Shown here piece by piece: positions 1,987 through 17,166 of a DNA stretch of 20,269 bases (the stretch's first letter is position 1; each line of letters opens with the position of its first letter). Location of the stretch: sequence record NC_074633.1, one strand, 5' to 3'. The notes below the pieces were generated by a model. The model saw nothing but the letters and a program-made list of their open reading frames with translations. It did not search any database and was not told the DNA's origin. A program made the position numbers and the translations under genes.

Positions 1987-2013
1987 ATATTCAACAGTAA
2001 TATTCATAATATT
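1987..2013 (+). repeat. 27-bp intergenic element ATATTCAACAGTAATATTCATAATATT (copy 1)
   Basis: Identical to 10363-10389. Confidence 0.92.
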
Positions 2014-2074
2014 AAACATAAAGATATTGCGCAAGTGAGATAGATTAAAAGATGTTTTCACTCAAGAAATAGTT

Positions 2075-3382
2075 GTGGCATCCCTAGAAGAGTTCAAAAA
2101 ATTGTTTGAAGAGAATTCGTTTGTTTTTAATCCGAGAGATGAAAATCGAATTTTATACTACATTTTCAGAAGTACCAACATTCCAGAAGAAAAGAAGGCT
2201 AACGCACTAAAGGCATGGCACTTAGGAAACGATAACCAGTACTTTGAAATGTATAAAGCGTTTTCTGATGAAATAAAATTTATATCTAAAATTGTGAAAT
2301 TCAAAGAGAAAGACGGCGAAATTGTCGCTTACTTCCAAAACGGCTTTGTCGGAAAGTTTGATCCAAGAATGTTGGCAGACAATCCGGATGACGCTTATAA
2401 TTTAATGCAGTCCTATCTTCTAGTTAAAATCAAAAAAACAACAGACAGTTGGGAAATTTACGATATTATACCAGTTGAACCTGCAAAAAATGTAGATGTC
2501 GCGAAACAACTATTGCAATTTGTAGAGTCTGAGCATATGACATACGCATCTTTGCTTTACGCTTTCGGCTATGACGTGGAAAAGATGGACCCGAATGATG
2601 TCTTTCTGACAGTCCCAAGATTTTTTTCACTTTTTGTCTCTTCATATTCAAAAAGAAGATACAATGTCATTGAGATTTCTAACCCTGGGACTGGCAAAAC
2701 TTCAGTTTTTACAATTTTACAAGAGGTTTTTAATTTTAGATATTATACTGAACCGCCAACTTATGCCAATTTAGTGTATGATGCCAGAAATAATGTGTAT
2801 GGCGCAGTCTATCTTGCTAAAGGTTTAATATTTGACGAAATTCAAACTTGGAAAGATAATACAAATCGTAAAAATATGGACACTATAAATTCCACACTTT
2901 CAACTGGTATCGAAAATTGTATCTGGACAAGAGGTGCCGGGACTGAAAGTAAATCCGCAACAATCCACAGATGTTTGCCGATAATTTATGCAGGAAATCC
3001 GATATCTATGACACTAGATAGATTCGCTTCAACTGAAGTTGAAGATTACCTACAAAAGTATGAAATTTTTACTCCGGCGATATTGGACAGATTCCACTTA
3101 ATCCATATTACAATAAAGAAAACTTACGACAAAGTTGGAAGTAGGAGGGTTCTTTATCCTTCAGTGCTGAAAGCCTTAGTCGACATTCTTCAAGAGAAAT
3201 TGAATCAACAAAATCACTTTGTGGAATGCCAAAATTTCTCATCAAGACGATATGAGCAGGCAGTTGACATCCAACTTCTATTGCGGACTTTGGATTTACA
3301 AAATGACGAAATTGAAAAAGACCAAGATGCATTTTGTTCACGACTTCAACAATATATGCGATTTATGGATCTTGGCGGGTGA
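2075..3382 (+). CDS. AAA+ ATPase / putative helicase (SIRV2 gp18/ORF436-like)
   Basis: Walker A SNPGTGKTS, Walker B LIFDE, sensor region IIYAGN, arginine-finger-like LDRF; syntenic with SSB and Cas4-like genes. GTG start. Confidence 0.88.
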   Translation: MASLEEFKKLFEENSFVFNPRDENRILYYIFRSTNIPEEKKANALKAWHLGNDNQYFEMYKAFSDEIKFISKIVKFKEKDGEIVAYFQNGFVGKFDPRMLADNPDDAYNLMQSYLLVKIKKTTDSWEIYDIIPVEPAKNVDVAKQLLQFVESEHMTYASLLYAFGYDVEKMDPNDVFLTVPRFFSLFVSSYSKRRYNVIEISNPGTGKTSVFTILQEVFNFRYYTEPPTYANLVYDARNNVYGAVYLAKGLIFDEIQTWKDNTNRKNMDTINSTLSTGIENCIWTRGAGTESKSATIHRCLPIIYAGNPISMTLDRFASTEVEDYLQKYEIFTPAILDRFHLIHITIKKTYDKVGSRRVLYPSVLKALVDILQEKLNQQNHFVECQNFSSRRYEQAVDIQLLLRTLDLQNDEIEKDQDAFCSRLQQYMRFMDLGG

Positions 3383-4014
3383 GAAAATTGGTTTACGAAA
3401 ATAGGATTAAGGAAAGCTTCAAAAAGCTTTATCCGGAGGATACGCTTTATCCGTCAGAAATTTGTCATTGTCTGAGGCGTTCAATTTTAGCAAGAAGAAT
3501 TGAACATATAAAAAATCTTACAAGTGAAGTTTTAGATTATGGATTAGCGATACATGAAGATGTCGAAACGTATTTTAAAGAAAAGTTAGGTTGCGAAACT
3601 GAAAAAGCAATTGAATATGAGATTGAAGGCGTAAAAATTTCAGCAAGAGTTGATTTATTGTGCGGAAGTGACCTTCTGGAGCTTAAGACGGTTTCGCATT
3701 TTATTCGTCAGCCTTACCAAGATCACATTGTTCAAGTTTCACTTTATCATCATATACTGTCGCAACTTGGCTATAAAATTGATAATGTTTACATTATTTA
3801 CATTAATAGGCAAAATTATGACGTTCAAGAATTTAAAATTCAAAAAGATCAACTTGAACAAGGATTGAAAAGCGCTATCGACTTCATTAAAAATTACAAA
3901 AAATACAAAGACGAGCAGAACATATTCAAAATCCCGACTGGCGATTCAACATTTTGTAAAAATTGCGAATTTAAGAACATTTGCTATGGATCTTTGGACG
4001 TTTTTTTAAAATGA
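3379..4014 (+). CDS. cas4: Stand-alone Cas4-like (RecB-family) nuclease (SIRV2 gp19-like)
   Basis: YPSEICHC, H...RVD...ELKT, QxxxY and C-terminal CKNC...C Fe-S ligands. The GTG start overlaps the upstream TGA (GTGA at 3379-3382). Confidence 0.9.
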   Translation: MRKLVYENRIKESFKKLYPEDTLYPSEICHCLRRSILARRIEHIKNLTSEVLDYGLAIHEDVETYFKEKLGCETEKAIEYEIEGVKISARVDLLCGSDLLELKTVSHFIRQPYQDHIVQVSLYHHILSQLGYKIDNVYIIYINRQNYDVQEFKIQKDQLEQGLKSAIDFIKNYKKYKDEQNIFKIPTGDSTFCKNCEFKNICYGSLDVFLK

Positions 4015-4082
4015 ATGTATAATTCTCTAATTCATCCCCGGGGTGCTATGCTTATAATCTATTTGTTATTAACTATTTTATT

Positions 4083-4409
4083 ATGAAGAATAAGTTTGAA
4101 GATTGGAATAAATATAGATCTGACGTCAATAAGATTATCGTTGAGTATTTTAACAAAGTCGGCATAATGGCGACAACTAGAGCTTTATATTTCTCATTTG
4201 CACAAAAAATATTGGCAATTGTTAAAAAACATCAAGATGGAAGTCTTATTAATAAATTGATTGAAGGAAATATACAATATTTTGTGACTGCATTTGATGC
4301 AAATGAAAAAGTATTGCGTGATATTGTAAAAATTATAATTTTAGCTAAAATTGAGAAAATGGATCCTGATGATATATTGGAAGAAGTTTTGACACAAAAA
4401 GCTAACTAA
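4083..4409 (+). CDS. N-terminally truncated paralog of the major capsid protein (SIRV2-type four-helix bundle)
   Basis: Gap-free manual alignment to the neighbouring MCP: RALYFSFAQK vs RAIYQGYGLK and YFVTAFDANEKVL vs YYVSAFGANPQIL. Confidence 0.75.
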   Translation: MKNKFEDWNKYRSDVNKIIVEYFNKVGIMATTRALYFSFAQKILAIVKKHQDGSLINKLIEGNIQYFVTAFDANEKVLRDIVKIIILAKIEKMDPDDILEEVLTQKAN

Positions 4410-4410
4410 T

Positions 4411-4460
4411 CATATACAAAATATTATGTATATGGATTTTTTGCATTGAATTTTTATAAG
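4411..4460 (+). promoter_or_regulatory. MCP promoter: palindrome CATATACA-N8-TGTATATG, GCATTGAATTT box and TATA (TTATAAG)
   Basis: 8-bp inverted repeat at 4411-4418/4427-4434 with AATATT in the spacer; box at 4443-4453; TATA at 4454-4460; ATG at 4491. Confidence 0.65.
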
Positions 4461-4490
4461 CTATTAATTCTAATATCTAATTGACAAAAA

Positions 4491-4895
4491 ATGGCGAAAG
4501 GACACACACCAAGAAGTTATTCGCAAAGGTATGGTAAATGGAATGCAAAATTCACCGCATTTTCAAATCCAACTGTTGCCAGCACAATCCTAACTAATGT
4601 TGCACCGACCGCGCAAGAGAACTTCCAGACTAACGTACCTAGATTTACGTCAGTCAATGAGCAAGTTTCGGCGGTATTGACTCAGTACGGCGTGACTGGT
4701 CCTTCTAGAGCAATTTACCAAGGCTATGGTCTAAAGGTTGCGAGAGCGCTTAACAGGATTGGCGCTGGTCCCGCTCTAACGAATATGGTCGCTGGCTTAA
4801 AGGCTTATTACGTTTCAGCGTTTGGCGCTAATCCACAAATTTTAGATGCTGTGACTAACATAATCCTAGGATCTCCTAACGGATACGTAAGCTAA
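4491..4895 (+). CDS. Major capsid protein (rudivirus 134-aa DNA-binding coat protein)
   Basis: MAKGHTPRSYSQRYGKWNAKF...GYVS is highly similar to SIRV1/2 ORF134 and has the same length. Confidence 0.97.
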   Translation: MAKGHTPRSYSQRYGKWNAKFTAFSNPTVASTILTNVAPTAQENFQTNVPRFTSVNEQVSAVLTQYGVTGPSRAIYQGYGLKVARALNRIGAGPALTNMVAGLKAYYVSAFGANPQILDAVTNIILGSPNGYVS

Positions 4896-4915
4896 CCTTA
4901 AAAGCTAATTTTCAA

Positions 4916-4922
4916 TTTTTTT
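4916..4922 (+). terminator. Oligo-T terminator after MCP
   Basis: T7 run about 20 nt after the stop. Confidence 0.6.
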
Positions 4923-4943
4923 ATCTTTTCCTACTTCTTATTT

Positions 4944-4955
4944 TGCTTAAAAATG
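4944..4955 (+). promoter_or_regulatory. Promoter core TGCTTAAAAATG
   Basis: Identical 12-mer at 17155-17166; in both cases TTAAAA starts exactly 29 nt before the ATG. Confidence 0.65.
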
Positions 4956-4975
4956 TAATCTTTTAGTTCTCAATC

Positions 4976-5200
4976 ATGTTTGAGGAATATTTAAGACAAA
5001 AAGGTTTCGAACCCCATCATATTTCAATTCTTAAAGATTTCTTGATTGAAATAAAAGAGGCATTAGGTATAAATGCTAGGAATTATGAATTAGACGACGT
5101 CATAAATTCTATTGTTGAATATTTTGCGACAACATATATGCTAAGAAGAGAAGATCTTTTCCAATTAATAAATGGAGCAATTGAGGACGGTGTTGTGTAA
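4976..5200 (+). CDS. Hypothetical alpha-helical protein, 74 aa
   Basis: Has its own TATA box and abuts the glycosyltransferase start (TAAATG). Confidence 0.75.
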   Translation: MFEEYLRQKGFEPHHISILKDFLIEIKEALGINARNYELDDVINSIVEYFATTYMLRREDLFQLINGAIEDGVV

Positions 5201-6220
5201 ATGCCTAGAACGCTCATTCTCACTATGGGATATGCATCTGTAAAAAATGTGGCAGAAGATATCGCAAGTGTTGTAGGTAATTCCACAATTGATGTTGAGC
5301 CTACTTTATATCTGTTTAATGCCAATAAATTCGATAGGCTTATAGTATCTGTGCCATTTGTTCCGCCATTATTGAATAACTACTTGTTGGTCTATAACTA
5401 TTTCCAAGGTGAAAAGTATTTTTATACGACAGTTGATGGAAAACCAATTGTGCAGGGCATGAATGAGCACCTTGTAAGGAATATAAAATACATTCCAAAT
5501 TCTCAATTTTCAGCTGAAAATTTGAAATCTGTAGATTTAGACGTAGATATTCCAGTTTTTCACGGCGTAAATGTCGATATTGTAAAGAAGGCCGAGCAAT
5601 TAGTTCCAAAATTGAGACAAAAATTAGATTTAGACTTCCCCGACGCTGTGAAGATTGGAGTAGTTACTGGAATGACAAAGCGCAAGAATGTTGATCTATT
5701 TGTTGAGACGACAAAGTATTTAAATGAAAAAATGCCAGATATTGCTAAAAATGTTCATTTCTTTGTAATTTCTCACGCAGATTTTCAAAAGTTAGAAGTT
5801 CCGGCAAATGTCCACTTTATCGCGCGATTTGGATACCAAAGTAGAGAAAAGATATTTGCATTCTACGGCGCAATGGACTACATATTTGTTCCATCCGGAT
5901 GTGAAGGATTTGGACTACCAGTTCTTGAATCCATGGCCATGGGTACCCCCGTCATCCACATGGCTATACCACCGTTTACGGAGTATACTAGTTGGCAGTG
6001 GAACTTTTTGTTTAAAGATGACGACGTAATGGAATATTACGATAAAGATCACGGTCAAATATGGAAAATTCATAGATTTAAGCCAGAGACTGGTGCACTA
6101 GCAATTGCAACTGCCGTAATGGCGACTGACAGAGAAGAGAGGAGCAAAAGATTAAAAGAATTAGCTAAAAAATATGATATTAAGTTTTTATACAAAAGAT
6201 TTCTAGAGGACTTCGAATAG
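5201..6220 (+). CDS. GT-B fold glycosyltransferase (GT4-like)
   Basis: RKNVDL and PSGCEGFGLPVLESMAMGTPVI (EX7E motif). Confidence 0.93.
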   Translation: MPRTLILTMGYASVKNVAEDIASVVGNSTIDVEPTLYLFNANKFDRLIVSVPFVPPLLNNYLLVYNYFQGEKYFYTTVDGKPIVQGMNEHLVRNIKYIPNSQFSAENLKSVDLDVDIPVFHGVNVDIVKKAEQLVPKLRQKLDLDFPDAVKIGVVTGMTKRKNVDLFVETTKYLNEKMPDIAKNVHFFVISHADFQKLEVPANVHFIARFGYQSREKIFAFYGAMDYIFVPSGCEGFGLPVLESMAMGTPVIHMAIPPFTEYTSWQWNFLFKDDDVMEYYDKDHGQIWKIHRFKPETGALAIATAVMATDREERSKRLKELAKKYDIKFLYKRFLEDFE

Positions 6221-7147
6221 CGCATATACTGTTGCAGGACCAGTTGCCCATGCATAGACATTTGCCGGATTATTAACTTCAAATTCTATGCTATCACCTG
6301 GCAAAATTGGGAAATTGTTATACAATTGATTTCCAATGTAAACTATGTAATTTGACAAGTTCTGAAGTATAATTTTTACAGTTTGCAGTGCAGGACCAGA
6401 ATAAATTGGCGATGGTGTTGTTGAAACTTTCAGTTGCAAACCTTGAATTGCAGGCGGTGACATATACATTGTCAACTTATTAATTGTGCTTGATAGTGAG
6501 TTCATTGCCAAGTAAATGTAAGACAGTGCGTAAAGCAAAGTGTCTGCAACACTGTTAATTGCCCTGGATAAACCAGTAACCATCTGATCTGTTAATTTTG
6601 CACTAACCAAATAGATATTTTCGTAAACATTTTGAATTAGTTGAGGCAAATACAAAGTCGGTAATATTGCAGTTTTTAGCTGATTATCAACGCCAATCAC
6701 AACTTGATATAGATTTTCATAAACGTTTGCAATTTCTTGTTGTAAAGCGCTTTGTGTCTGTGCGACTGTCCCGGCGGTAAGTTTTGCGATTGCATTATAA
6801 ACGTCGGTCGGCATTTGTTCAATTGCTTCATATAGTTGAAATTGACTGTTTAAAATTGCTTGAATTTGTTCTATTGCAGAACCAACAAATCCTGCGATAT
6901 AAATTGGGTCTTGTTCAGTTAGCACTGGCTGGCCTTCAACATAAACTTCCTCTGAAAAATTCCCAACTTGCGCAGTAATATTGTTTGGGACATAAAGACT
7001 GCCATTTTTGAATAATTGCCTATCGATTAGTGAACCGCCAAAATAGATGTCTGACAACGTCAGCACTGCCGTGTTCCACATGGCAGATGTCAGTCTCTGG
7101 AACGGCTTTGCAAGAAGACTACTAATTGTCGCATATTGGATGCTCAT
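6203..7147 (-). CDS. Conserved rudiviral protein, probable minor virion component
   Basis: 314 aa. N-terminal LTSAMWN motif, central amphipathic coiled region, and a C-terminal beta domain resembling a segment of the 604-aa protein. Confidence 0.7.
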   Translation of the reverse strand: MSIQYATISSLLAKPFQRLTSAMWNTAVLTLSDIYFGGSLIDRQLFKNGSLYVPNNITAQVGNFSEEVYVEGQPVLTEQDPIYIAGFVGSAIEQIQAILNSQFQLYEAIEQMPTDVYNAIAKLTAGTVAQTQSALQQEIANVYENLYQVVIGVDNQLKTAILPTLYLPQLIQNVYENIYLVSAKLTDQMVTGLSRAINSVADTLLYALSYIYLAMNSLSSTINKLTMYMSPPAIQGLQLKVSTTPSPIYSGPALQTVKIILQNLSNYIVYIGNQLYNNFPILPGDSIEFEVNNPANVYAWATGPATVYALFEVL

Positions 7148-7193
7148 GATTTAAATTTATACGCTTTTAAGCTTAAAAACATCACATTTAATT

Positions 7194-7532
7194 ATGAGTC
7201 TTGACAATATTTTCGGTCCAGTCAGGCTCATTATCGACAAATTAAAAGAATTGGAAATGAGAGGCGAAGCTTATGGATTTTCACAATATTTGCCAAAGTC
7301 AATAATTTTATACAGAGCATCAGAAAATTCAATATTATATCAAGTGTTTATACCATCATTCCCTTACTATTTTGAATTTCTCCTAGAAAAAGATGAAAAA
7401 ACCAAAGCATTGCAAATTTCGGATTATAGAGTTGTTTATCCCGCACCAGTGAAAATCTCTGATTCGCAAATTCTAAAAGAATTAATCCAGGATTACTTGA
7501 CTATGCGACTTGGGGGCGGGCAAAATGAGTGA
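7194..7532 (+). CDS. Hypothetical protein, 112 aa
   Basis: Divergent from 7147, TATA-like sequence upstream, ATGAGTGA coupling to the next gene. Confidence 0.75.
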   Translation: MSLDNIFGPVRLIIDKLKELEMRGEAYGFSQYLPKSIILYRASENSILYQVFIPSFPYYFEFLLEKDEKTKALQISDYRVVYPAPVKISDSQILKELIQDYLTMRLGGGQNE

Positions 7533-7773
7533 GCTGACGCTTATTCTTACTACAATTTCGACAACTGCGACTTTGCTATTATCAATTGTTACTCTTTACT
7601 ACAAAATAAAACAAATGTTTCGTGAGGCAGTGAAAGAAATCGTGAAGCAAGAGTTGGACAATATAGTCAAAGAGATCATAAAGATAAAAGAAAAGCAAGA
7701 TGCGCAACAAAAAGATATTGAATATCTAAAGCAAGAAGTTGAAGAAATAAAAAGGAAGATTGAAAAATTATAA
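7525..7773 (+). CDS. Membrane-anchored coiled-coil protein, 82 aa
   Basis: Hydrophobic N-terminus (LTLILTTISTTATLLLSIVTLYY) followed by a heptad K/E-rich tail; ATG7525 overlaps the upstream stop. Confidence 0.78.
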   Translation: MSELTLILTTISTTATLLLSIVTLYYKIKQMFREAVKEIVKQELDNIVKEIIKIKEKQDAQQKDIEYLKQEVEEIKRKIEKL

Positions 7774-7968
7774 TCACTTTGTTGTTTTTTCTCTTACCTC
7801 TTTCAGAATTTTGATAACTTCTTGTGCTTTTTTGTACAATTCTGTCTTTCTAATATTTTCATCTTCAACTGTCGCTAATTCTAATGCCAAGTTATCAAGG
7901 GCGACAAACAATTTTGCTGAAAACTCTTTGTCAAATTTTGGTTTTTTCTCTTCTTCCTTCTCACTCAT
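7774..7968 (-). CDS. Hypothetical charged protein, 64 aa
   Basis: Translationally coupled to the GNAT-like gene (8-nt overlap). Confidence 0.7.
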   Translation of the reverse strand: MSEKEEEKKPKFDKEFSAKLFVALDNLALELATVEDENIRKTELYKKAQEVIKILKEVREKTTK

Positions 7969-8458
7969 CTTTTCTCACCTCTTCTTTTTTTTCGCTTACA
8001 TTTAAAAACTTGACAAAAACTGGAGTATTTGTCCTAGGGGTATTACCTACATATTCAAATCCGGCGTTCTTGTATAAGGCGTTTGAATGATCTGCAAAAC
8101 CTAAAGTCCATAATACTTCAATTCCATAAGATTTCAGCAGTTGAGATAATTTTTCTAAAAATTCGACTAGATAATCTCCAGGCGCAGTCTTTGTAATCCT
8201 ACGAATGAAATAAGATCTATCGATTGGAATATTATATTTTTCAGCGACAAATCTGAACGGCGTTGAGTCGTTAATCCACGCAACTGCAACTATGTAATTG
8301 TCACATTCATATGCAAAATATTTCTGGATCTTTGACGCCCCTCCGCCATGTGGCATACCCTGGCTGTGATATTTTGCGACAAGCAGTCGTGCTAATTCAA
8401 TATCTTTCTTATCTTGAAGTTCAACTATTTTGCATTCTTCTTGCATTTCAAATATCAT
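7961..8458 (-). CDS. Putative GNAT-family acetyltransferase (SIRV ORF154-like)
   Basis: YIVAVAW strand, YFIRRI, and NALYKNAGFEYVG (GNAT motif B). The true start may be ATG8446, given the TATA at 8471-8480. Confidence 0.7.
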   Translation of the reverse strand: MIFEMQEECKIVELQDKKDIELARLLVAKYHSQGMPHGGGASKIQKYFAYECDNYIVAVAWINDSTPFRFVAEKYNIPIDRSYFIRRITKTAPGDYLVEFLEKLSQLLKSYGIEVLWTLGFADHSNALYKNAGFEYVGNTPRTNTPVFVKFLNVSEKKEEVRKDE

Positions 8459-8497
8459 TATTCATCATATGCTTTATAAGTAAACTGGTATACAGTT

Positions 8498-8845
8498 TTA
8501 GGCATTTATGACGACTTCATCATCTTTATCTACAATTTTAAATTTCCATTTTTTAGCTTTTTTGAAATACACTAATACTGCCGGTTTGCAGTCGCAAAAA
8601 TTGAACATGTCGCAAAATTGAAATAGTTTATCAATTTGGAATTTATCAATCTTTTTCGAAAGTTTTGAAGTTGACTTAACTTCAATTGCAAAAATTATTC
8701 CATCTTTTGTTGCGATAATGTCGGGGAGTGGCTGTTTACCAGAACCAGAAACTGGAATTCTTGCGACTTTATAACCTTCATTTTTTAACAAATCCAGTGC
8801 TTTATATTCATAATATTTCCCAGAATTATGAATGTTAATCTTCAT
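8498..8845 (-). CDS. hjc: Holliday junction resolvase (archaeal Hjc family)
   Basis: SGKYYE, RIPVSG, PDIIA and IEVKST PD-(D/E)xK signatures. Confidence 0.95.
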   Translation of the reverse strand: MKINIHNSGKYYEYKALDLLKNEGYKVARIPVSGSGKQPLPDIIATKDGIIFAIEVKSTSKLSKKIDKFQIDKLFQFCDMFNFCDCKPAVLVYFKKAKKWKFKIVDKDDEVVINA

Positions 8846-8853
8846 GTTTTTTA

Positions 8854-10317
8854 TTATCTGTTTGCTATGTTTTTAAAACCTTTATTGTAAAATATAGGTT
8901 TGTAATTCTGCAGGTACACTTTTTTCAGTTCTAATTTTCTTTGTGTTTGTATTTTTCCAAGACCTTGCAATTGTTCACCAAGTTGTTGAGCAAATTGGAG
9001 ATCTTCATCCGAAAGACCGTAAAATTTCCATTTTTGTCTCCAATATTGTAAAAATTGATCATACGGTAATGTCCTTTCGCCGGCGTTATACGACAGATTG
9101 CCCTGGTATGTATATCTTGCGACTTCTAGGATCGCTGACGCCACCATTTTTGCATACCAGATGTTGTTGTATTTCTTATTTACAATTTTTTGTATTCTTT
9201 CATACAATTCATAATTTGAAATATATGTTTCTGCATATTGTGAATTTGAAATATTTGTTGCACCAGGTCCTAATTCTTGCAAATGCATGCCAAATATTTG
9301 ACCGAAAACTGAAATTACTGCCCTATCAGTTGCCAAAATTGCAGATAATTGAATGTCGTTAAGATTTTGATCTCCGTTCGTGGCTTCGCCACTCACGTCG
9401 TTCGGCACTTCGTGCCTCACTTCAGGGAAGTCTGGCATCAAAACGTTAAAATCTAAGGGCGTAAGGTCTAAAATTACTCCAAGTGCTTGTGAGAAATTTT
9501 GGATTTTTATGTTGTCGGCGAGAAGTTGATAATTATTTTCTTCTTCTGAAAAGGCGGAACGGTCAAACCAAGAAACGTCAAGTGCTATCCCACTATCAAT
9601 TATGTTGTTCAAGAGTGGAAGAAATGCTAACAAATATTTCGCTAAGTCTGGGAGTGAATTGAAATATTGTTGTGGGGTTTCGTTTTTCTGTTGAGCCAAT
9701 TTTGACAGTGCGTCAAATACCCCAGTATTTTTGACTAAAGAGTAAAGATAATTGTCAACTTCTGGATTTTGTGTCACTGCAACTCCAAGATTTTCAAATG
9801 TTGTAACAGTTACTGTCGTTGGCGGATTAGCAAAATACGATTTTAATTTTTCACATGCAAGATTATTGAAAATTACTCCAGGAGCAGGGGCGTAAACTGA
9901 GGCGTCAAATTGTGTTTCGTCAAAAACTGCAATTTGATACAATGTTGAACAATTTTTAACATATTGATCATAAAGTGAAGTAAAACTGTTGATGACGTCA
10001 AGTGCTGAAGATGTTGATAATGTCGCTAAATTGAAAGTAAACGATTGTGGCGAATTTGGTATGAAATTATTTAACACTGATGCTGAAAAATTGTTTATTG
10101 CATTTAGGAAGTTAAGAACAATTTGTGCGAAAGCAACCCCGTAATCGACATTCATGTAAGGCGGGGGTTTAACATTTTCAAGTGAAGATGGCAAAGTGCT
10201 TTCAATTCCTGCGCTTAACATTGCCTTAAATGCGGGATAAACATTTTGATTGAAAATCTTGCGGTAGAGATGATATTTCATCTGTGCAATTGATCTACTG
10301 CCTCTCCTTTTTGTCAT
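8854..10317 (-). CDS. Minor structural protein (SIRV2 ORF488-like)
   Basis: Basic N-terminus MTKRRGSRSIAQMKYHLYRKIF and FDxSxFD-type repeats; about 487 aa from ATG10317, matching the family size. Confidence 0.8.
   Translation of the reverse strand: MTKRRGSRSIAQMKYHLYRKIFNQNVYPAFKAMLSAGIESTLPSSLENVKPPPYMNVDYGVAFAQIVLNFLNAINNFSASVLNNFIPNSPQSFTFNLATLSTSSALDVINSFTSLYDQYVKNCSTLYQIAVFDETQFDASVYAPAPGVIFNNLACEKLKSYFANPPTTVTVTTFENLGVAVTQNPEVDNYLYSLVKNTGVFDALSKLAQQKNETPQQYFNSLPDLAKYLLAFLPLLNNIIDSGIALDVSWFDRSAFSEEENNYQLLADNIKIQNFSQALGVILDLTPLDFNVLMPDFPEVRHEVPNDVSGEATNGDQNLNDIQLSAILATDRAVISVFGQIFGMHLQELGPGATNISNSQYAETYISNYELYERIQKIVNKKYNNIWYAKMVASAILEVARYTYQGNLSYNAGERTLPYDQFLQYWRQKWKFYGLSDEDLQFAQQLGEQLQGLGKIQTQRKLELKKVYLQNYKPIFYNKGFKNIANR
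9375..9422. repeat. Two 24-bp imperfect tandem units, each with a 5-bp stem and GAA (minus strand) triloop
   Basis: GTGGC-TTC-GCCAC at 9380-9392 and GGCAC-TTC-GTGCC at 9404-9416; shared flanks CGTTCG and CTCAC. Confidence 0.8.
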
Positions 10318-10362
10318 GCCACATCTGTGTAATATTTGCATTTTCAAACCTTTTATTGCTCA

Positions 10363-10408
10363 ATATTCAACAGTAATATTCATAATATTCATTATATGCA
10401 TATTAAGC
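10363..10408 (+). repeat. 27-bp element (copy 2) plus ATATGCATAT palindrome in a divergent promoter region
   Basis: 10363-10389 is identical to 1987-2013; 10394-10408 is the exact reverse complement of 17107-17121. Confidence 0.92.
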
Positions 10409-10455
10409 ATTGAATTTATTTTAAGTTGTTGTGACAAAATAGATAACGATAAAAA

Positions 10456-10695
10456 ATGTCAGCCAACCCATCTGGACCACACGGTAAGAAAGTATCTGCA
10501 AGAGTTATTAGAGCTTTATTTGTCGGTTCAACAATTGGAATATTTGGCGGTTTTGGTTTATATTTACTTGCTGACGCAATTAACACATTAGCTCATGCGA
10601 CAATTGTAAGTCCTACTGGATTTCTATTACTAGGTTTTGGCGGTTCAATAGCAGGAGTAGTTGGTACAGAATTATCAAAAGATCTTGAAGAATAA
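10456..10695 (+). CDS. Small membrane protein with two glycine-rich TM helices, 79 aa
   Basis: ALFVGSTIGIFGGFGLYLLA and GFLLLGFGGSIAGVVG hydrophobic GxxxG segments. Confidence 0.8.
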   Translation: MSANPSGPHGKKVSARVIRALFVGSTIGIFGGFGLYLLADAINTLAHATIVSPTGFLLLGFGGSIAGVVGTELSKDLEE

Positions 10696-10707
10696 ATTCA
10701 AGATATG

Positions 10708-10714
10708 TTTTTTT
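10708..10714 (+). terminator. Oligo-T terminator
   Basis: T7 run 12 nt after the stop at 10695. Confidence 0.5.
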
Positions 10715-10740
10715 AAACTCTTTTTCCTAATGTGAAAATT

Positions 10741-12546
10741 ATGAGTAATTTACCCTATCCCTTAAAATACAAATTGCCACTTCAATATTTGTCTGTCGAA
10801 GATTGGAATAATTTTGTAAATGATCTTCTACTAGTTTATAATTCTCCAGTTGGCGCTTTAGCAAAATACTACTCCAAAGGAAATTTGCAAAATTTGAATG
10901 GAATTTTTGCAAAAACGTTAGATGTTGTACAACTTTATGTAAATGGTTATGAAGCGTTATACAATCTTAAGCAAGTTCTGGCATACACTTTTGGCGGTTT
11001 GTTTGAAAAATACAAACTTTACCCCCCAGTTAACTTTCAAGATATTGAGCAATTAACAAAATTGCCAAGTTTCTATGTGCAAAAATACAACATCCCTATC
11101 GCAAAATATAAACAAATAGTTGAAACATTTAATTTCATATTTGAAAAACATTTGCCTAGAATTACAAAAACTATGCAAGTGCTAATTCCCAAACTTTCGT
11201 ATAAATACCTGCCTAAGGCAATTGCGGGCGGAATGACGACAATTTCTGGTTCACAGTCATTATCTCAAATTTTGCAAAACGAATTCGGAATTACAGATTT
11301 TTCGACATGGAAAGGCGTAACAATTGAAAATTTAAGCGATAACAACTTGATTATTAATAATGCAATTGTATTAATGCCAAAACAGTGTTTAAAACTTACC
11401 GCCTCAAGTCCATCAGAAGTTACAATTACTGCTCAACAACCTGCGCTAATTTCAACATTATTAGAATTTAGCGGTATACCTGTGACAGCCTATGCAATAA
11501 CGATAACGAATAGCCAATCTGATCCTACACCTACAAATTTTCAACAATTATTAACGCTTAATTTGTCCGGTATAATTTCTTCACCTTCACAATTATTGAA
11601 TTTGAAATTCTGCCAAGACGTAAATTGCAACACACAATTATACGCATGGATTGAATATTATACCAGTGATTTATCCACAGTTTACGTTTGGGTTTTAATA
11701 CCAGGCGGTATTCCCGCAAATTCTTCAATAACGATATACATGTTTGTAACAAATAAAAATCAATATCCTTACACTGGGATAAATGCATATTACAACACGG
11801 CATACGATAACGGTCCAAATGTCTTTGACGCTTATATGAACTTTATGGGTTCTAGACCAATACCTTCAGATTACAATTATTATACAAATCTTTCTGGATA
11901 TCCAGCGTTTGTCGCTGAAAGTGGAACAACTCCAGGATATTTGGATACATTTCCTAACGCCAGCTATTCCTATGCCGATGTTTATATATCAGCTCCAAAG
12001 TCTGCAAGAGTCCCGGAAATATTTGAAGGTATGGCATATTATGACGGCAGTGTTGATGAGCAAGGAATTTTCTTTCTTGCTAATCCGTCAGGCGGTTGGT
12101 CAACTCCTGCATATACTGTATGTGGTGGAAGTATTAGCGGGGATCTTGAAGTCCCAACAGATGGTTGGGCTGTTACATGGGATCCAGCAGGTTGTACCCC
12201 AGCAGGAATTTTAGGCGGGGGTAATGTAGAGGCGCAAATATCAGGTGCTTTTTTTACATCTTCTGGATATAATTTCTATCAAGCAATAGTTACAGATAAT
12301 GAAATAATTTTCAATGGTGCAACACCAAGTGATCCAACTACTCCATATGCCCAATTGCAAATCCAAAATGTTACTAGTTACAGTGGGACGATTACGATTT
12401 ATGGCAATGCGTTAGGGACAGTCGACAGTTCGTTCACTGATTCACATTATGGATATTGGTATTATCTCAGGGCAAGAGCCTATCCACCAAACGGAGTAAT
12501 GCCGACAAATTCACAACCACAGAAAATTATCGCATATATTGCATGA
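10741..12546 (+). CDS. Minor structural protein (SIRV2 ORF564-like) with a DUF2341-like/lectin-like C-terminal region
   Basis: Position before the large tail gene; YAITITN...LKF...LYAWIE...VWVLIP...IPANSSITIYM...NGPNVF pattern and terminal YYLRARAYPPNGVMP. ATG10741 preferred over GTG10732. Confidence 0.72.
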   Translation: MSNLPYPLKYKLPLQYLSVEDWNNFVNDLLLVYNSPVGALAKYYSKGNLQNLNGIFAKTLDVVQLYVNGYEALYNLKQVLAYTFGGLFEKYKLYPPVNFQDIEQLTKLPSFYVQKYNIPIAKYKQIVETFNFIFEKHLPRITKTMQVLIPKLSYKYLPKAIAGGMTTISGSQSLSQILQNEFGITDFSTWKGVTIENLSDNNLIINNAIVLMPKQCLKLTASSPSEVTITAQQPALISTLLEFSGIPVTAYAITITNSQSDPTPTNFQQLLTLNLSGIISSPSQLLNLKFCQDVNCNTQLYAWIEYYTSDLSTVYVWVLIPGGIPANSSITIYMFVTNKNQYPYTGINAYYNTAYDNGPNVFDAYMNFMGSRPIPSDYNYYTNLSGYPAFVAESGTTPGYLDTFPNASYSYADVYISAPKSARVPEIFEGMAYYDGSVDEQGIFFLANPSGGWSTPAYTVCGGSISGDLEVPTDGWAVTWDPAGCTPAGILGGGNVEAQISGAFFTSSGYNFYQAIVTDNEIIFNGATPSDPTTPYAQLQIQNVTSYSGTITIYGNALGTVDSSFTDSHYGYWYYLRARAYPPNGVMPTNSQPQKIIAYIA

Positions 12547-12600
12547 TTTGATTATTTTTTCCTTAAATGCAATAAATCAAACTACACAATTCTTATAATG

Positions 12601-12627
12601 AATAATATGAATATTCGCATTCAATAT
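12601..12627 (-). repeat. Degenerate inverted copy of the 27-bp element
   Basis: The reverse complement ATATTGAATGCGAATATTCATATTATT matches the element at 21/27 positions. Confidence 0.7.
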
Positions 12628-12678
12628 TGTGCAGTTGAATAAATTATAATTGCATTTGCTGATATTATTTAGATAGAA

Positions 12679-15600
12679 ATGAGCTTTATCATCTCTGGTC
12701 TTGAAAGTTTGGAAACATTCTTTTCAGATGAACTTACTGCTCTGGAAAACTTTACAAACTTTTTAGCATCTGATTTCGTTTCATTTTTCCAAACTGTTTC
12801 AACGGATTTGCAAAATTTCATTTCATTTTTGGCAACTGCAATTAGCGATATTCCAACTTTCATACAACAGAACATATCATATTTTGTACAAGTACTTCAA
12901 AATGTATTTGCAAATATTGCATCTGCAGTATCTGGATTTACACAATATGTTGCAAACGCATTACAAGGCTTTTTCCAAGATGTTGCAAATTTAATGCAAG
13001 GATTCCTAAATGCAATTTATAACTTTTTCTCAAATATTGCAAACGATCTTGCTAATTTTGTAAATGTCGCAGTTTCTGATTTTATACAAGGTTTTAGTCC
13101 GTTAGCGAAATATATTGCCCCCGCTATTCCACAAATTGTAAGCTCAGTCTCCCCAATTATTGCCCCCTATCTTTTAGCTAGGATTTTGCCAAATGCAATT
13201 GACAGATTAGGAGAAATCTTGCCTGAAATTGAAATTGATTTAGCCCCAATCGGTTTAGGTGGGAAATTTAACATTAAATTTGGAGAAATTGCAAAAATGG
13301 TTGGTGAGCCAATTGCAGATCTCATGAAAGAGATCTCTGGTGAAATGATGACTGACCTTAAGGAGTTTTTGAAAGAACCATTTATTTCTAATTTCAAAAT
13401 TACAATAAGAGAAATTTTCAATAGTATTGGACTTGGAGACCTGCCATTTGCGGATCCATCATATCGTGAAATTACGGCATGGTTAGGGGCGAGATCATTT
13501 TCAGAATTGAAAGATCATCTAAAAGAGACACTACTTCTCACTGGTTATCCTGCATGGTTCACTAATGCATTCTTAGAACCGCCAGCTGACGATTATATTC
13601 CTGGAAATCCACTGTTTAAGCCAGTTTCAATTCGTGATGTGATTACTGCAGTTGAATATGGTCTATTATCTTCATCAGCAGTTGAACAATATGCAGAAAA
13701 TAATTTGGTAACGAAAAAAACTGCAAAATTAATGTATCAAAATCAGAATTTGAGATTATTTCAGCGTGTGGTTGAGGAAGGAATAAGAAGTTTTGTCATC
13801 CAGCCGGATAAGGCTTATGATCTAATGTTGTCTGGGAAAGATCTCACAGGAAAAGATCTATTTACAAAATATTTCGAAATATTTTATCAATTTGCGACAC
13901 AAAGATTCGCAAAACAAGTCCTCAGATCCCTACTTTCAAGAGCACTATCCAATTTTGGTAGACCTTATATAGATATAAAGTATTTATCTAAAACAGTTGA
14001 TGAAATATACAAACAATTGAATTTGCCAAAAGAAATCTCCCTATTATTTGGACAATTAATTACAGAATCACAATTAATACAGTACAACGAGTTAATTTTC
14101 ACATTTTTGAGATCAAAAGCTGAAAAAGGAATATTTAACAAAGCAGATGTAGAGAAGTTATTAAAAGAACACAATTTTAATGTTTCTGAATCACTTTTCA
14201 TTTTACAACATTATGTAGATTCAGTTGTTGCAACTGAAGAAATACAACTATTAGAACAAAAACTACAAAATTTCTTTATATCTGACAAAGATGCAGAAAA
14301 TGAATTGAAAAATTTAAAAGTAGATGATAGATATGCAAAACTTTTAATCGAAAGATACTACAATTTGACGTTAACAAAAGAGAAAGCAAACGTATACCTT
14401 TCACTGTTGAAAAAAGGATATTACAACAAACATGAGGCAAAAACTGTATTCAAAGCACTTGGTTACTCAACAAGTGTAATTGATGAACTGCTAGACTTAT
14501 ATTCACAAGAAATTGAGGCAGAATTACAGATAAAGACAATACAACAGAAAGCCCAAATGTTCCTTCTGGATGAACAAGAGATTAACACTGAATTGAAAAA
14601 ATTACATGTCTCTGACGCACTTATTCAAGAAATTGTAACGGAGTATTTGCAAATTCCACTTTTAAAGCAACAAGTTGACGTTTATACATCTCTGATCAGA
14701 AAGGGGTACATAAACGCACAAGAGGCAAAAAGGATATTTTCTGCACTCGGATTTAAACAAACTGCAATTGAACAATTGATCCCACTTTACACACAAGAAA
14801 TTGAAATTGAGGCAACAATTTCGAAATATAAAGCACTTCTTCAACATTTCCTAATTGATGAAAAGGTTGCAGAACAAGAATTGCTAAAACTGCATATTTC
14901 TAATGCATTAATTGACGAATTGTTAACAGAATATTATCAAGTCCCATTGAATGGAAAAATATTCAATATCTACTTTGGTTTGTTAGAAAAAGGATATATG
15001 ACGGCGGAAACAATTAAGCGAATTCTAGGGTCAAAAAATATTAATGCAACTGCACTTGCAGAAATTTCAAACGCTTACAATTTCGCAATTGAAATTGAAA
15101 ATGCAGTTAAATATTACCAGTCATTGCTGAAAAATTTACTAATTGATGCCAAAACTGCGGAACAAGAATTAAGGAAATTAGGCGTTTCTGACGTGTTGAT
15201 AAAAGCAATAATTGCGGAGTATACGCCAGTTTTAGTAAATGTGAAAGCAGTTGCGCAAACAATTATAGAGGGCGCAATATATCATGTGGGCAAAGTTCCA
15301 ATTTCAGTTGCTCATGTCGTGCCAGAATTGAAGAAATTGAACATTCCAGATAACCAAATTAATTCGCTTATAGCTGAAATTGAATCACAAATTGCATTGG
15401 AAATCTGGAAAAAATATTTACCGTCACTTTCAGATATTAAAACTGCGCTGACTTACAATTATCCAATCGACAAATTATTGCAATTATCTCTCATACCTGC
15501 TGAATTATTCAATCTGCATGCTGATCTAACTAGATATGAACTTATCGCAAGAGAAGTACAAAGCTTAAAGTCGTATTACTCAAAATTACTGATCTACGGC

Positions 15601-16026
15601 ATAACAAATTCACAGTTAGAACAAATACTGAGACAATATGGAATTAACGACTCAATATTGCAAGTTTTACAATTACAGGCACAACTGGAGAAAATTCTGA
15701 CTGCTTACCAGGAGTTATACTTAACGCCGTCAAAAGTACTATCAATCGCTGAATATGTTTCAAACCCAGATCAATTAATTCAAAAAGTATTCAGAGAATA
15801 TAGCGTGCCGGCTGACTTACAGAATGTCTACTTGGAATACGCAAGAAATAGAAGGCTTAGGTCATACGTTAGCGAAATAATATACACAATTTCAGATTTA
15901 GTTGAGAGACATAAGATATCCCTGGACCAGGCGGTCCAGTACTTGCAACAATTCAAAAAATATGGTCTAACAGATGAAGAAATTGAATTAATTAAATTAA
16001 ACTGGCAATTAAGAGGGATGACATAA
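12679..16026 (+). CDS. Large terminal-fibre protein (SIRV2 ORF1070/gp38-like)
   Basis: Largest ORF (1115 aa), all-alpha, with an amphipathic N-terminus and internal repeats; syntenic with other rudiviruses. Confidence 0.85.
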   Translation: MSFIISGLESLETFFSDELTALENFTNFLASDFVSFFQTVSTDLQNFISFLATAISDIPTFIQQNISYFVQVLQNVFANIASAVSGFTQYVANALQGFFQDVANLMQGFLNAIYNFFSNIANDLANFVNVAVSDFIQGFSPLAKYIAPAIPQIVSSVSPIIAPYLLARILPNAIDRLGEILPEIEIDLAPIGLGGKFNIKFGEIAKMVGEPIADLMKEISGEMMTDLKEFLKEPFISNFKITIREIFNSIGLGDLPFADPSYREITAWLGARSFSELKDHLKETLLLTGYPAWFTNAFLEPPADDYIPGNPLFKPVSIRDVITAVEYGLLSSSAVEQYAENNLVTKKTAKLMYQNQNLRLFQRVVEEGIRSFVIQPDKAYDLMLSGKDLTGKDLFTKYFEIFYQFATQRFAKQVLRSLLSRALSNFGRPYIDIKYLSKTVDEIYKQLNLPKEISLLFGQLITESQLIQYNELIFTFLRSKAEKGIFNKADVEKLLKEHNFNVSESLFILQHYVDSVVATEEIQLLEQKLQNFFISDKDAENELKNLKVDDRYAKLLIERYYNLTLTKEKANVYLSLLKKGYYNKHEAKTVFKALGYSTSVIDELLDLYSQEIEAELQIKTIQQKAQMFLLDEQEINTELKKLHVSDALIQEIVTEYLQIPLLKQQVDVYTSLIRKGYINAQEAKRIFSALGFKQTAIEQLIPLYTQEIEIEATISKYKALLQHFLIDEKVAEQELLKLHISNALIDELLTEYYQVPLNGKIFNIYFGLLEKGYMTAETIKRILGSKNINATALAEISNAYNFAIEIENAVKYYQSLLKNLLIDAKTAEQELRKLGVSDVLIKAIIAEYTPVLVNVKAVAQTIIEGAIYHVGKVPISVAHVVPELKKLNIPDNQINSLIAEIESQIALEIWKKYLPSLSDIKTALTYNYPIDKLLQLSLIPAELFNLHADLTRYELIAREVQSLKSYYSKLLIYGITNSQLEQILRQYGINDSILQVLQLQAQLEKILTAYQELYLTPSKVLSIAEYVSNPDQLIQKVFREYSVPADLQNVYLEYARNRRLRSYVSEIIYTISDLVERHKISLDQAVQYLQQFKKYGLTDEEIELIKLNWQLRGMT
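14125..15222 (+). repeat. Four 96-aa (288-bp) protein repeats in the fibre protein
   Basis: KG(I/Y) starts at 14125, 14413, 14701 and 14989, exactly 288 bp apart; the fourth unit is partial. Confidence 0.88.
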
Positions 16027-16027
16027 A

Positions 16028-17107
16028 ATGGCCTACGTAAACAAATATTCCATAATTAGCTCATCTGCATGGAATCAAATTGTACAAAATGCGCAACTAA
16101 TTTACAATATTTGGCAACAAGTCGTGAGCGCAATTCAACAACTTACAAATATAAATGCACAAGTAAATTATTCAAATTATCAAACACAACAACAAAATGT
16201 AGCGAATATAATAAGTGGTCTTTCCAGGTATTTGTCCTATCCAACAATAAAAACTCCTACTCCAAATATTCTAACTGCAAGCCCTGGCATGATATTAACT
16301 GCCGACATGATGAATAAAATGGTAAATGCAATACAAAAATTGTATAATTCAATAATGCCAACGCCTGCACCACAAATTTCAGAGGTTTTTGGCGGAGATA
16401 TTGTAACCTCAGATCATTGGAATAAAATCGTTAAAGCAATAAATGAATTACAAAATGCATTTGAAATAATATTTTTACCAGTACCCACACTAGGCGGTCC
16501 CATCATAGGCGGACCAATAATATTACCGCCAGAAAGTTTTTCATTCGATTTAATATCACCATATGTGATTATACCGTTTACACCTAGTTTTGGTATTCAA
16601 GTTAAAGAATATTTAATAGATCTCTTTGTTAAAAATCATATTTTATATTTGATTGCGGGATATCCAGAACCTGCAATAAATACAAAATATACTTTCTCTG
16701 GATCAGAAAAAATAGGCAATATCTTTGCATATGGTTACAATGTAACATTTTCACTGATTGAAAGCGTAAAAATACAGGATATATATCTATATGGAGATTA
16801 CAATAATGTAAACCCGGCATACAATTCAAAAATAGGAAACCTATTAATGATAGGCGATAATAATGTAATAACGGCATCTAATAGTGCAACAATTGTAAAT
16901 GTAACAATAATAGGAAATAACGACACTGTAACTACAAATGATAACTCAGTAATTCAAAATCTTACCGTATGCGGTCAAGGAAATTTAATCTCAGGATCTG
17001 GTATTGTAAATCTCTATTTATGTAATCCTGACAATACTATCGGAAGTGGTGTGCAAAATATAATAACAAGTTCTCCACTATGCCAAGTTGTCTGCGGTTC
17101 AGGTTAG
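16028..17107 (+). CDS. Putative virion spike/adhesin with N-terminal WN-helix repeats and a C-terminal beta-helix
   Basis: Three [IVL]-[ST]-x3-(W/M)N-x2-V motifs; five exact 20-aa I-x-N/D...G-x-N repeats starting at 16712; coupled to the fibre gene. Confidence 0.72.
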   Translation: MAYVNKYSIISSSAWNQIVQNAQLIYNIWQQVVSAIQQLTNINAQVNYSNYQTQQQNVANIISGLSRYLSYPTIKTPTPNILTASPGMILTADMMNKMVNAIQKLYNSIMPTPAPQISEVFGGDIVTSDHWNKIVKAINELQNAFEIIFLPVPTLGGPIIGGPIILPPESFSFDLISPYVIIPFTPSFGIQVKEYLIDLFVKNHILYLIAGYPEPAINTKYTFSGSEKIGNIFAYGYNVTFSLIESVKIQDIYLYGDYNNVNPAYNSKIGNLLMIGDNNVITASNSATIVNVTIIGNNDTVTTNDNSVIQNLTVCGQGNLISGSGIVNLYLCNPDNTIGSGVQNIITSSPLCQVVCGSG

Positions 17108-17166
17108 CTTAATATGCATATGTTTAATATTTGGAATATTACAATTGCGCATTCTGCTTAAAAATG
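17107..17166. promoter_or_regulatory. Inverted copy of the AATATT element plus TGCTTAAAAATG core upstream of the methyltransferase operon
   Basis: 17107-17147 matches the reverse complement of 10368-10408 at 34/41 positions; TATA core at 17155-17166. Confidence 0.7.

Follow-up and report, generated by a model that had tools for sequence, protein, structure and literature searches.

A three-box palindrome upstream of core-gene promoters in Metallosphaera rod-shaped virus 1 and other rudiviruses: a candidate upstream activating site

To our knowledge, only a handful of factors controlling transcription in archaeal viruses have been described, and few of their sites have been footprinted. The closest described system comes from the rudivirus SIRV1, whose promoters 56, 134, and 399 were used to pull the host winged-helix protein Sta1 from Sulfolobus extracts (Kessler et al. 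2006, PMC1635249). On promoter 134, Sta1 footprints cover two regions of ~20 bp, one at the core promoter and one ~30 nt upstream of it, and three sites in this one virus gave the consensus ATNT-N8-(A/T)NAT (PMC1635249). Sta1 activates transcription in vitro when TBP or TFB is limiting (PMC1635249). Here, we describe a family of palindromic elements in promoter-bearing spacers of Metallosphaera rod-shaped virus 1 (MRV1), whose complete genome (20,269 bp, 100% identity to MN876843) is the whole stretch of DNA analyzed, referred to below as the window. The elements were first noticed as AATATT arrays in a reading made without database searches (hereafter, the sequence-only reading), which overlooked the precedent closest to them, namely Sta1 on the SIRV1 capsid promoter (PMC1635249).

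Virus-encoded regulators of the ribbon-helix-helix (RHH) type have also been described. Per the account of Guilliere et al. 2009 given in the review PMC5569661, SvtR (SIRV1 gp08) has a high-affinity site that precedes the TATA box of ORF1070/gp30, a structural gene, by ~80 nt; the same account presents it as a repressor with four targets and gives spreading along the DNA as a proposal. AvtR of the lipothrixvirus AFV6 contains two RHH units per chain, has about eight conserved sites, and activates or represses (PMC5569661).

MRV1 is an archaeal virus of the Rudiviridae (Hoswirudivirus) with Metallosphaera sedula as its host, and its record annotates 27 genes. Its nearest relatives, ARV2, SSRV1, and ARV3, share ~79-83% DNA identity with it, and these four genomes, used for all four-way alignments, are referred to here as the four hoswirudiviruses. 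Intergenic DNA makes up 1299 nt of the MRV1 genome and has a G+C content of 26%, vs 35% in coding DNA. The paper describing MRV1 mentions no promoter motif, and the palindrome strings were not found in a full-text literature search, an earlier description in figures or in other papers being possible.

The unit of the family is a palindrome of 22-24 bp with the layout ATAT-N5-ATAT-N5-ATAT, that is, three ATAT cores in a 9-bp register, with palindromic spacers and usually with c...g flanks. From 51 unique instances in rudiviral genomes and contigs, the family consensus is cATATWCATAATATTATGWATATg, or, when symmetrised, A-nn-c-ATATWCATAATATTATGWATAT-g-nn-T. Five MRV1 copies, elements A to E, are listed in Table 1. 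Elements A and B carry a fourth, outer box (AATATT or ATATT) behind a 7-nt spacer, CAACAGT, element B continues into the tail GCATATTAAGC, and elements C and D are the same composite in inverted orientation. The number of boxes per element ranges from three to five, those of element B starting at 10363, 10376, 10385, 10394, and 10400.

All of the repeat figures given in the sequence-only reading were reproduced. The same 27-mer, ATATTCAACAGTAATATTCATAATATT, occupies 1987-2013 and 10363-10389, the reverse complement of 12601-12627 matches it at 21/27 positions, and the reverse complement of 17107-17147 matches 10368-10408 at 34/41 positions, including a perfect 15-mer (GCTTAATATGCATAT), while the sequence at 4411-4434, CATATACAAAATATTATGTATATG, forms 11 of 12 palindromic pairs when checked base by base. 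That reading took AATATT hexamers to be the conserved unit, in place of which we find the 22-24 bp palindrome with its three ATAT cores in a 9-bp register. It also held the arrays to be confined to intergenic DNA and proposed a comparison of coding with intergenic frequencies; this confinement stands for the multi-box array and fails for the hexamer alone, of which coding DNA contains many copies. The genome has 60 copies of AATATT, whereas dinucleotide shuffles give 24 +/- 4.7. Coding DNA holds 49 of the 60, most of which are explained by codon usage, since a synonymous-codon shuffle already predicts 37.5 +/- 4.6, and the hexamer was rejected as the unit. The 11 intergenic copies compare with 3.4 +/- 1.8 expected (0 of 2000 shuffles attain 11), and AATATT pairs no more than 13 bp apart number 6 genome-wide, 5 of them intergenic (0.09 expected), the sole coding close pair being at 13868/13878. 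As a separate observation, TATA-like hexamers in coding DNA fall below synonymous-codon shuffles (TATATA 5 vs 12.3, TAATTA 6 vs 11.7, and TTATAA 9 vs 14.6), which is consistent with avoidance of spurious promoters.

To score the palindrome itself, we used a weight matrix built from all other genomes with MRV1 left out and compared it with a first-order Markov null. This MRV1-free matrix ranks the five flagged sites first to fifth, all of them intergenic: 4412 (32.8 bits), 10376 (25.9 bits), 17118 (22.8 bits), 2000 (19.4 bits), and 12593 (10.6 bits). The null has a mean maximum of 7.3 bits and predicts 0.17 sites at or above 10 bits, vs the 5 observed. Mismatches to the AATATT-centred pattern number 0 at 4412, 10376, and 17118, 1 at 2000, and 2 at 12593, and the MRV1 sites with at most one mismatch to ATATNNNNAATATTNNNNATAT are all intergenic (4/4). 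When five rudiviruses are pooled, 23 of 25 perfect triple boxes are intergenic, with intergenic DNA accounting for 12% of the sequence (binomial P = 1.8e-19, a value that does not allow for the A+T richness of intergenic DNA). Both of the coding triple boxes lie in a 57-codon terminal open reading frame (ORF) of ARV3, gp01 (839-1012), at 843 and 939 and thus 96 bp apart; this ORF may be spurious and the region regulatory. We have very little doubt that the elements are a real, selected cis-element.

Conservation in relatives, which the sequence-only reading had offered as a check, was found, and its description of one orientation-independent, multi-box family situated upstream of TATA-like boxes is upheld. 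Elements occur at orthologous positions in ARV2, SSRV1, and ARV3, namely upstream of the ATPase gene, the capsid gene, the gp19/gp20 pair, ORF1115, and the methyltransferase operon, with an extra copy upstream of the TFB gene in ARV2 and SSRV1. When the four genomes are aligned, ATAT cores and TATA-like boxes show no variation, unlike the spacers; the capsid 22-mer of SSRV1 is identical to that of MRV1, and those of ARV2 and ARV3 differ at spacer positions only. The distance from the palindrome centre to the centre of the putative TATA box is kept at each promoter, at 37 (ATPase), 33 (capsid), 34 (gp20), 33 (gp19), 41 (ORF1115), and 32 bp (methyltransferase). This corresponds to three to four helical turns, with 32-34 bp in four promoters and 37 and 41 bp in the other two. 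Such conserved placement is expected of a protein-binding site that defines a regulon. At the capsid and gp20 promoters, ARV3 carries insertions that increase the distance of the first palindrome from the TATA box to 93-94 bp, and a second palindrome at exactly 33 bp (capsid) and 34 bp (gp20) restores the spacing. In the gp19/gp20 spacer, a single palindrome stands 33 and 34 bp from two opposed putative TATA boxes.

The family extends beyond this genus. With leave-one-out matrices and a threshold of at least 12 bits, we counted 4 sites in MRV1 (null mean 0.05), 7 in ARV2 (0.07), 7 in SSRV1 (0.03), 10 in ARV3 (0.12), 7 in SIRV1 (0.10), 4 in SRV (0.15), 1 in ARV1 (0.15), and 1 in SMRV1 (0.03). 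ARV1 and SMRV1 are essentially without the motif, and their lone matches, at 6286 in ARV1 (13.8 bits) and at 9831 in SMRV1 (12.8 bits), are marginal. Metagenomic rudivirus contigs from IMG/VR contain 2-5 perfect copies each, one of which precedes the capsid gene by ~110-130 bp. The SIRV1 palindromes have TTATAT/TATATA rather than AATATT at their centre and precede ORF399, the capsid gene, GT335, the ORF110 operon, ORF562, and the ORF268/gp35 divergent pair. A search of 596 Gb of bacterial and archaeal genomes for the strict consensus yielded 38 scattered matches in unrelated taxa and none in Sulfolobales, which makes the element virus-specific, and a host regulon was rejected.

Restriction to promoter spacers, orientation independence, conserved cores with free spacers, fixed spacing, and poor hairpins together point to a site in double-stranded DNA at which a protein acts on the core promoter, and the elements are very probably transcription-factor sites acting on the adjacent promoters. 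We lean, if only slightly, toward reading the palindrome as an upstream activating site for a regulator that would most likely be a host factor of the Sta1 type, possibly joined or replaced by the viral protein gp04. Under this reading, a dimeric or multimeric transcription regulator would occupy the palindrome and would help TBP and TFB to assemble on the neighbouring core promoter. Palindromic symmetry would allow the site to work in either orientation, such that one copy could serve both of the divergent genes gp19 and gp20, and six core promoters would be served in total: those of the ATPase/Cas4 operon, the capsid gene, gp19 with the Holliday-junction resolvase gene, gp20-gp21, ORF1115-gp23, and the methyltransferase (MTase)-glycosyltransferase (GT) operon. 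That the elements activate seems rather probable given their position, as sites well upstream of the TFB-recognition element (BRE) and TATA box are typical of archaeal activators and not of repressors that occlude TBP, TFB, or RNA polymerase. The factor could be a winged-helix activator of the Sta1 type (Lrs14/MarR-like), acting alone, with gp04, or replaced by it; the two proposals for the binder are mutually compatible. Naming a Sta1-type host factor specifically is a tentative step by analogy with SIRV1, to which we would give somewhat less than an even chance.

The analogy draws on a comparison with the SIRV1 promoters. A palindrome at 11072 in SIRV1 scores 25.2 bits and belongs to the same family as the MRV1 elements, and its first 16 bp, ATATACATTATATTAT, fit the Sta1 consensus. 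Matches to this consensus around SIRV1 promoter 134 comprise ATATACATTATATTAT and ATTTAAAGAATAAAAT (part of the Reg2 oligonucleotide as published), with an overlapping match at 11060 in addition, and ATATACATTATATTAT and ATTTAAAGAATAAAAT together with ATATACTTATATACAT from promoter 56 jointly reproduce ATNT-N8-(A/T)NAT exactly. The palindrome at 11072 is located 39 nt, start to start, upstream of the Reg2 match at 11111, and the SIRV1 promoter-399 fragment contains two palindrome copies. From the reproduced consensus and the promoter-399 copies, we infer that the upstream Sta1 site is a SIRV1 member of this family, its footprint covering the orthologous palindrome. In MRV1, the elements have a similar placement, at 32-41 bp centre to centre, to that of the Sta1 site ~30 nt upstream of the core promoter.

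Several points weigh against Sta1 and against activation. The equation of the SIRV1 palindrome with the Sta1 footprint is our own reconstruction from sequence. The 16-bp Sta1 consensus is very loose, with 11 matches per kb in SIRV1; among the five MRV1 sites, we read only 4412 and, on the minus strand, 10376 as fitting it, and not 2000 or 17118. Further, the site to which Sta1 was mapped in a host promoter, that of sso0777 (TTATT/CANGNA/TTATT; PMC2175319), is unlike the palindrome, and the measured dissociation constant of Sta1 for the Reg2 oligonucleotide is only ~10 uM. That Sulfolobales have no strict palindrome is odd for the preferred site of a host factor and favours a virus-encoded binder. 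Finally, the argument for MRV1 and the other hoswirudiviruses is built on genome comparison: the MRV1 TATA boxes and transcription starts are read from the sequence, and activation over repression from position.

A virus-encoded binder is the alternative that fares best. MRV1 encodes three small RHH-type proteins, among which gp04 is our candidate. The open frame of gp04 reaches back to 935 and offers ATG codons there and at 968, and the annotated start at 1034 cuts off an N-terminal strand and helix, MVSVRVSKSQYELF, that are conserved at the protein level in ARV2, SSRV1, and ARV3, so gp04 probably starts at 968 or 935. An AlphaFold2 model of 968-1252 shows two beta-alpha-alpha units (pLDDT 78.5, pTM 0.68), and its best PDB matches by Foldseek are the F-plasmid relaxosome chains E/F/G and VirC2, with a probability of up to 0.99, TM-scores of 0.54-0.69, and E-values of 0.05-0.9. 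The output names the relaxosome complex only, and we take its chains E/F/G to be TraY, a single-chain tandem RHH protein. Searches with gp04 retrieved no Pfam match and no sequence similarity to PDB structures. Genes resembling gp04 are present in the motif-bearing genomes examined, namely MRV1, ARV2, SSRV1, ARV3, SIRV1, and SRV, and in 11 IMG/VR contigs. In SRV, the homologue is ORF98. In SIRV1 (NC_004087), it is an unannotated 78-codon gene at 6084-6320 (+) with a GTG start and a frame possibly open from ~6063, situated between the Rep-like ORF119 and ORF131. No homologue was found in SMRV1, and the syntenic place in ARV1 holds only ORF56, a 56-residue single-RHH protein.

The palindrome could accordingly be read as the operator of gp04. 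Each ATAT/AATATT box would then be contacted by a single pseudo-dimeric molecule, with cooperative binding of three to five molecules in the 9-bp register, and the outcome would be either activation of the core regulon or the nucleation of repression that spreads, as has been suggested for SvtR and AvtR. We consider this possible, though rather unlikely. In its favour, tandem-RHH genes accompany the motif in every motif-bearing genome and contig examined, the two motif-poor genomes lack one (SMRV1 having no such gene and ARV1 the 56-aa single-RHH protein), the strict motif is virus-specific, and a palindrome stands directly downstream of the gp04-like gene in several contigs. The two beta-alpha-alpha units of the model, with presumed TraY chains and VirC2 as best matches, point the same way. 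So does the layout of the elements: the operators of MetJ, Arc, and omega consist of short palindromic boxes in a fixed short register and in variable number, an arrangement typical of RHH operators that the MRV1 elements share. Cooperative RHH binding is described in the review PMC5569661. On the other side, the co-occurrence is confounded by phylogeny, as ARV1 and SMRV1, the only two independent absences, are the most divergent lineages. Pull-downs from extracts of infected cells with palindrome-bearing SIRV1 promoters gave host Sta1 only (PMC1635249). The Foldseek E-values are weak (0.05-0.5), and DNA binding by the gp04 family is a prediction. The sequence-only reading had named a viral RHH protein as a possible binder, and with tandem-RHH gp04 co-occurring with the motif this is plausible. 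A bolder version, in which the palindrome and a gp04-type protein form a dedicated virus-encoded regulator/operator pair across most Rudiviridae that switches on the core (non-early) genes, divergent promoter pairs included, from a single symmetric site three helical turns away from the TATA box, with the Sta1 footprint being secondary, seems doubtful to us. If true, the pair would be an early example of an archaeal-virus-encoded activator with a defined upstream activating site.

A second viral protein, gp01, groups with SIRV1 ORF59, which we take to belong to the SIRV2 gp21/aCcr1 clade. This clade binds AGTATTA (PMC9976892). The AGTATTA box was rejected as the source of the elements, with 4 MRV1 matches vs 3.5 expected and 0 in the elements; ARV1 has a gp01 homologue at 48% identity, yet the motif is essentially absent from that virus.

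Roles outside transcription, such as replication, recombination or resolution, packaging, capsid nucleation, or cruciform formation, appear improbable. They would suit a perfect or near-perfect AT-rich palindrome that is virus-specific, and the proteins of rudiviruses include a Holliday-junction resolvase and a Cas4-like nuclease. However, every copy is found in a spacer that holds a promoter, with its distance to the TATA box conserved, and there is none at the termini, from which rudiviral genomes begin to replicate. Spacer symmetry is lost in several copies that still have their ATAT cores (for example, CAT...CAT in element B), which indicates that pairing is not the conserved feature. Predicted hairpins reach -2 to -4.7 kcal/mol at 37 C, and the hosts grow at about 70-80 C. 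With folding this weak, and with one of the five elements folding better than its shuffles, single-strand structure is not the selected feature, and a hairpin or cruciform was rejected.

The sequence-only reading also suggested that the elements cooperate with the viral TFB, gp27 (Pfam TFIIB zinc ribbon and cyclin repeat), in which case the palindrome would be a BRE-like signal redirecting the host RNA polymerase. This is less probable still. TFB is encoded only by the four hoswirudiviruses, which are also the only genomes with the AATATT centre, the extra outer box, and the tail. However, SIRV1, a virus without a TFB homologue, has many copies of the palindrome, which is also found in SRV, whose record has no TFB annotation (no sequence search of SRV was made), as well as in metagenomic rudivirus contigs (in which no TFB search was made). 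A BRE is directional and abuts the upstream edge of the TATA box, whereas the element works in both orientations, is centred 32-41 bp from the TATA box, and leaves at least about 17 bp between the edge of its 22-mer and that box; it is about 20 bp or more upstream of the place expected for a BRE. On these grounds, identity with a BRE was rejected, and the element is unlikely to cooperate with the viral TFB.

That the pattern merely reflects chance or the AT-rich composition of intergenic DNA is barely credible: although intergenic G+C is 26%, AATATT is over-represented generally, and codon usage explains most coding copies, this reading is refuted by the shuffle and Markov controls, by positional conservation in relatives, and by the leave-one-genome-out matrix, which recovers exactly the flagged sites.

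Table 1. Coordinates of the palindromic elements, the associated putative TATA boxes, and the candidate binder gene in the MRV1 genome
Feature	Coordinates	Strand	Description
Element A, upstream of gp07 (ATPase/Cas4 operon)	1987..2021	+	ATATT 1987-1991, spacer CAACAGT, 22-mer 2000-2021 ATATTCATAATATTAAACATAA, third box degenerate; 19.4 bits
Putative TATA box of gp07	2044..2051	+	ATTAAAAG; conserved four-virus block; palindrome centre 37 bp upstream in MRV1, ARV2, SSRV1
Element E, upstream of major capsid gene gp10	4411..4434	.	Near-perfect 24-bp palindrome CATATACAAAATATTATGTATATG; 22-mer 4412-4433; best site of the genome, 32.8 bits
Putative TATA box of capsid gene	4452..4459	+	TTTTATAA; invariant in four viruses; palindrome centre 33 bp upstream in 4/4
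Weak sixth match, gp18/gp17 spacer	8458..8479	.	TTATTCATCATATGCTTTATAA; overlaps likely gp17 TATA box; 7.8 bits, inside null range; membership uncertain
Putative TATA box of gp19	10350..10357	-	AATAAAAG (minus strand); 33 bp from palindrome centre in 4/4 viruses
Element B, between divergent gp19 (-) and gp20 (+)	10362..10408	+	AATATT 10362-10367, spacer CAACAGT, 22-mer 10376-10397, tail GCATATTAAGC 10398-10408; 25.9 bits
Putative TATA box of gp20	10417..10424	+	TATTTTAA; 34 bp from palindrome centre
Element C (inverted), upstream of gp22/ORF1115 (minor structural protein)	12593..12628	-	Degenerate 22-mer 12593-12614; outer AATATT 12623-12628 gene-proximal; 21/27; 10.6 bits
Putative TATA box of ORF1115	12641..12648	+	AAATTATA; palindrome centre 41 bp upstream in MRV1, ARV2, ARV3
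Element D (inverted), upstream of gp24 (MTase-gp25-GT operon)	17107..17147	-	Tail GCTTAATATGC 17107-17117, 22-mer 17118-17139; 34/41; 22.8 bits
Putative TATA box of gp24	17157..17164	+	CTTAAAAA; centre 26.5 nt from ATG; palindrome 32 bp upstream in MRV1, ARV2, SSRV1, 44 bp in ARV3
gp04 long form, candidate binder, predicted single-chain tandem RHH	968..1252	+	Record annotates 1034-1252 (72 aa)

The putative TATA boxes also bear on gene starts. A leaderless transcript is suggested for gp07, as its TATA box is centred 27.5 nt from the GTG start codon. The putative gp19 TATA box points to a gp19 start at 10317 and not at the annotated 10341, which is probably too far upstream; the ARV2 start is equivalent to 10317, giving a normal TATA distance. 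The weak match in the gp18/gp17 spacer resembles the TATA-proximal degenerate copy of other rudivirus capsid promoters.

Some further sequences were noted. A half-element, ATATTCATAATATT, lies at 8804-8817 near the 5' end of the coding sequence of gp18 (Holliday-junction resolvase) and is kept in ARV2 (11239) and SSRV1 (9420); either an internal promoter or coincidence within coding sequence could account for it. Directly after the gp06 stop, at 1906-1929, a 24-bp block (TATGCCTAATTTTTCTCACTTTTG) is nearly invariant in the four hoswirudiviruses and single-copy in MRV1, with an inverted copy in the TFB-side spacer of ARV2 (about 24750-24787) and of SSRV1; this block may act as a terminator or have some other regulatory role. 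Positions 1-80 and 20190-20269 of MRV1 form a terminal inverted repeat of 80 nt with 91% complementarity. Since gp01 starts at base 16, leaving hardly any promoter space, the MRV1 termini may be incomplete.

The element described here is sequence-defined and family-wide, follows a strict spacing rule, and has two concrete candidate binders, and the operons it precedes are those for replication/recombination, the capsid, the terminal fibre, and glycosylation. This makes several questions testable now, namely how core genes are co-ordinated in rudiviruses, whether Sta1 or a viral tandem-RHH protein is the binder, and whether one upstream site serves two divergent promoters. Additionally, probable start codons are corrected for gp04 and gp19, and an unannotated SIRV1 gene is indicated.

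Compared with known systems, the MRV1 elements are closest to the Sta1 sites on SIRV1 promoters 134 and 56, with which they share their character as imperfect inverted repeats of rudiviral promoters and, at the capsid gene, a place ~30 nt upstream of the core promoter. The published sites were described by a loose 16-bp consensus, whereas the unit here is a three-box palindrome of 22-24 bp occurring 4-10 times per genome in six genomes and in many contigs, and MRV1 differs further in its AATATT centre, extra box, and tail. Similar to the SvtR site, element C of MRV1 precedes the ORF1070 homologue; however, no MRV1 protein matches the SIRV1 svtR locus by tblastn. The SvtR consensus ATnnTTCAAnAnnnnnAAAATG was rejected as an explanation of the elements, having 21 MRV1 matches with at most 3 mismatches vs 18.6 +/- 4.3 expected, none overlapping an element. 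The long form of gp04 resembles AvtR, TraY, and VirC2 in its two predicted RHH units per chain, whereas the palindrome bears no relation to the AvtR consensus, ATnnTnnTAnnACnTT. The classical archaeal upstream activating site, as presented in PMC1635249, is that of Ptr2 from Methanocaldococcus jannaschii, a dimeric factor that recruits TBP from palindromic upstream sites. Ptr2 belongs to the Lrp family, recognizes another sequence, and uses two sites rather than the one three-box palindrome of MRV1, so it serves as an analogy only.

Another promoter motif has been described from the early and anti-defence genes in connection with Aca8; it consists of a strong BRE/TATA with flanks and precedes terminal early genes such as ARV2 gp03, gp39, gp42, and gp43 (Bhoobalan-Chitty et al. 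2024, PMC11065993). It is similar to the palindrome in being a virus-specific promoter motif obtained by comparing upstream regions within rudivirus genomes, and the two were judged not to be the same, as the genes behind the palindrome are core genes and the palindrome itself is located upstream of their core promoters. MRV1 has a single promoter of the early type, TTAAAAATGTTGTCAT, at 929-944 in the gp03/gp04 divergent spacer, which resembles GATATAAAAATGTCATAAT upstream of SIRV1 ORF56b and ORF131; with the palindrome promoters, MRV1 thus apparently has at least two promoter classes. Overall, the finding adds to the known upstream regulator sites of rudiviral promoters, and what is new is a family-wide, spacing-constrained regulon signal together with a new candidate binder.

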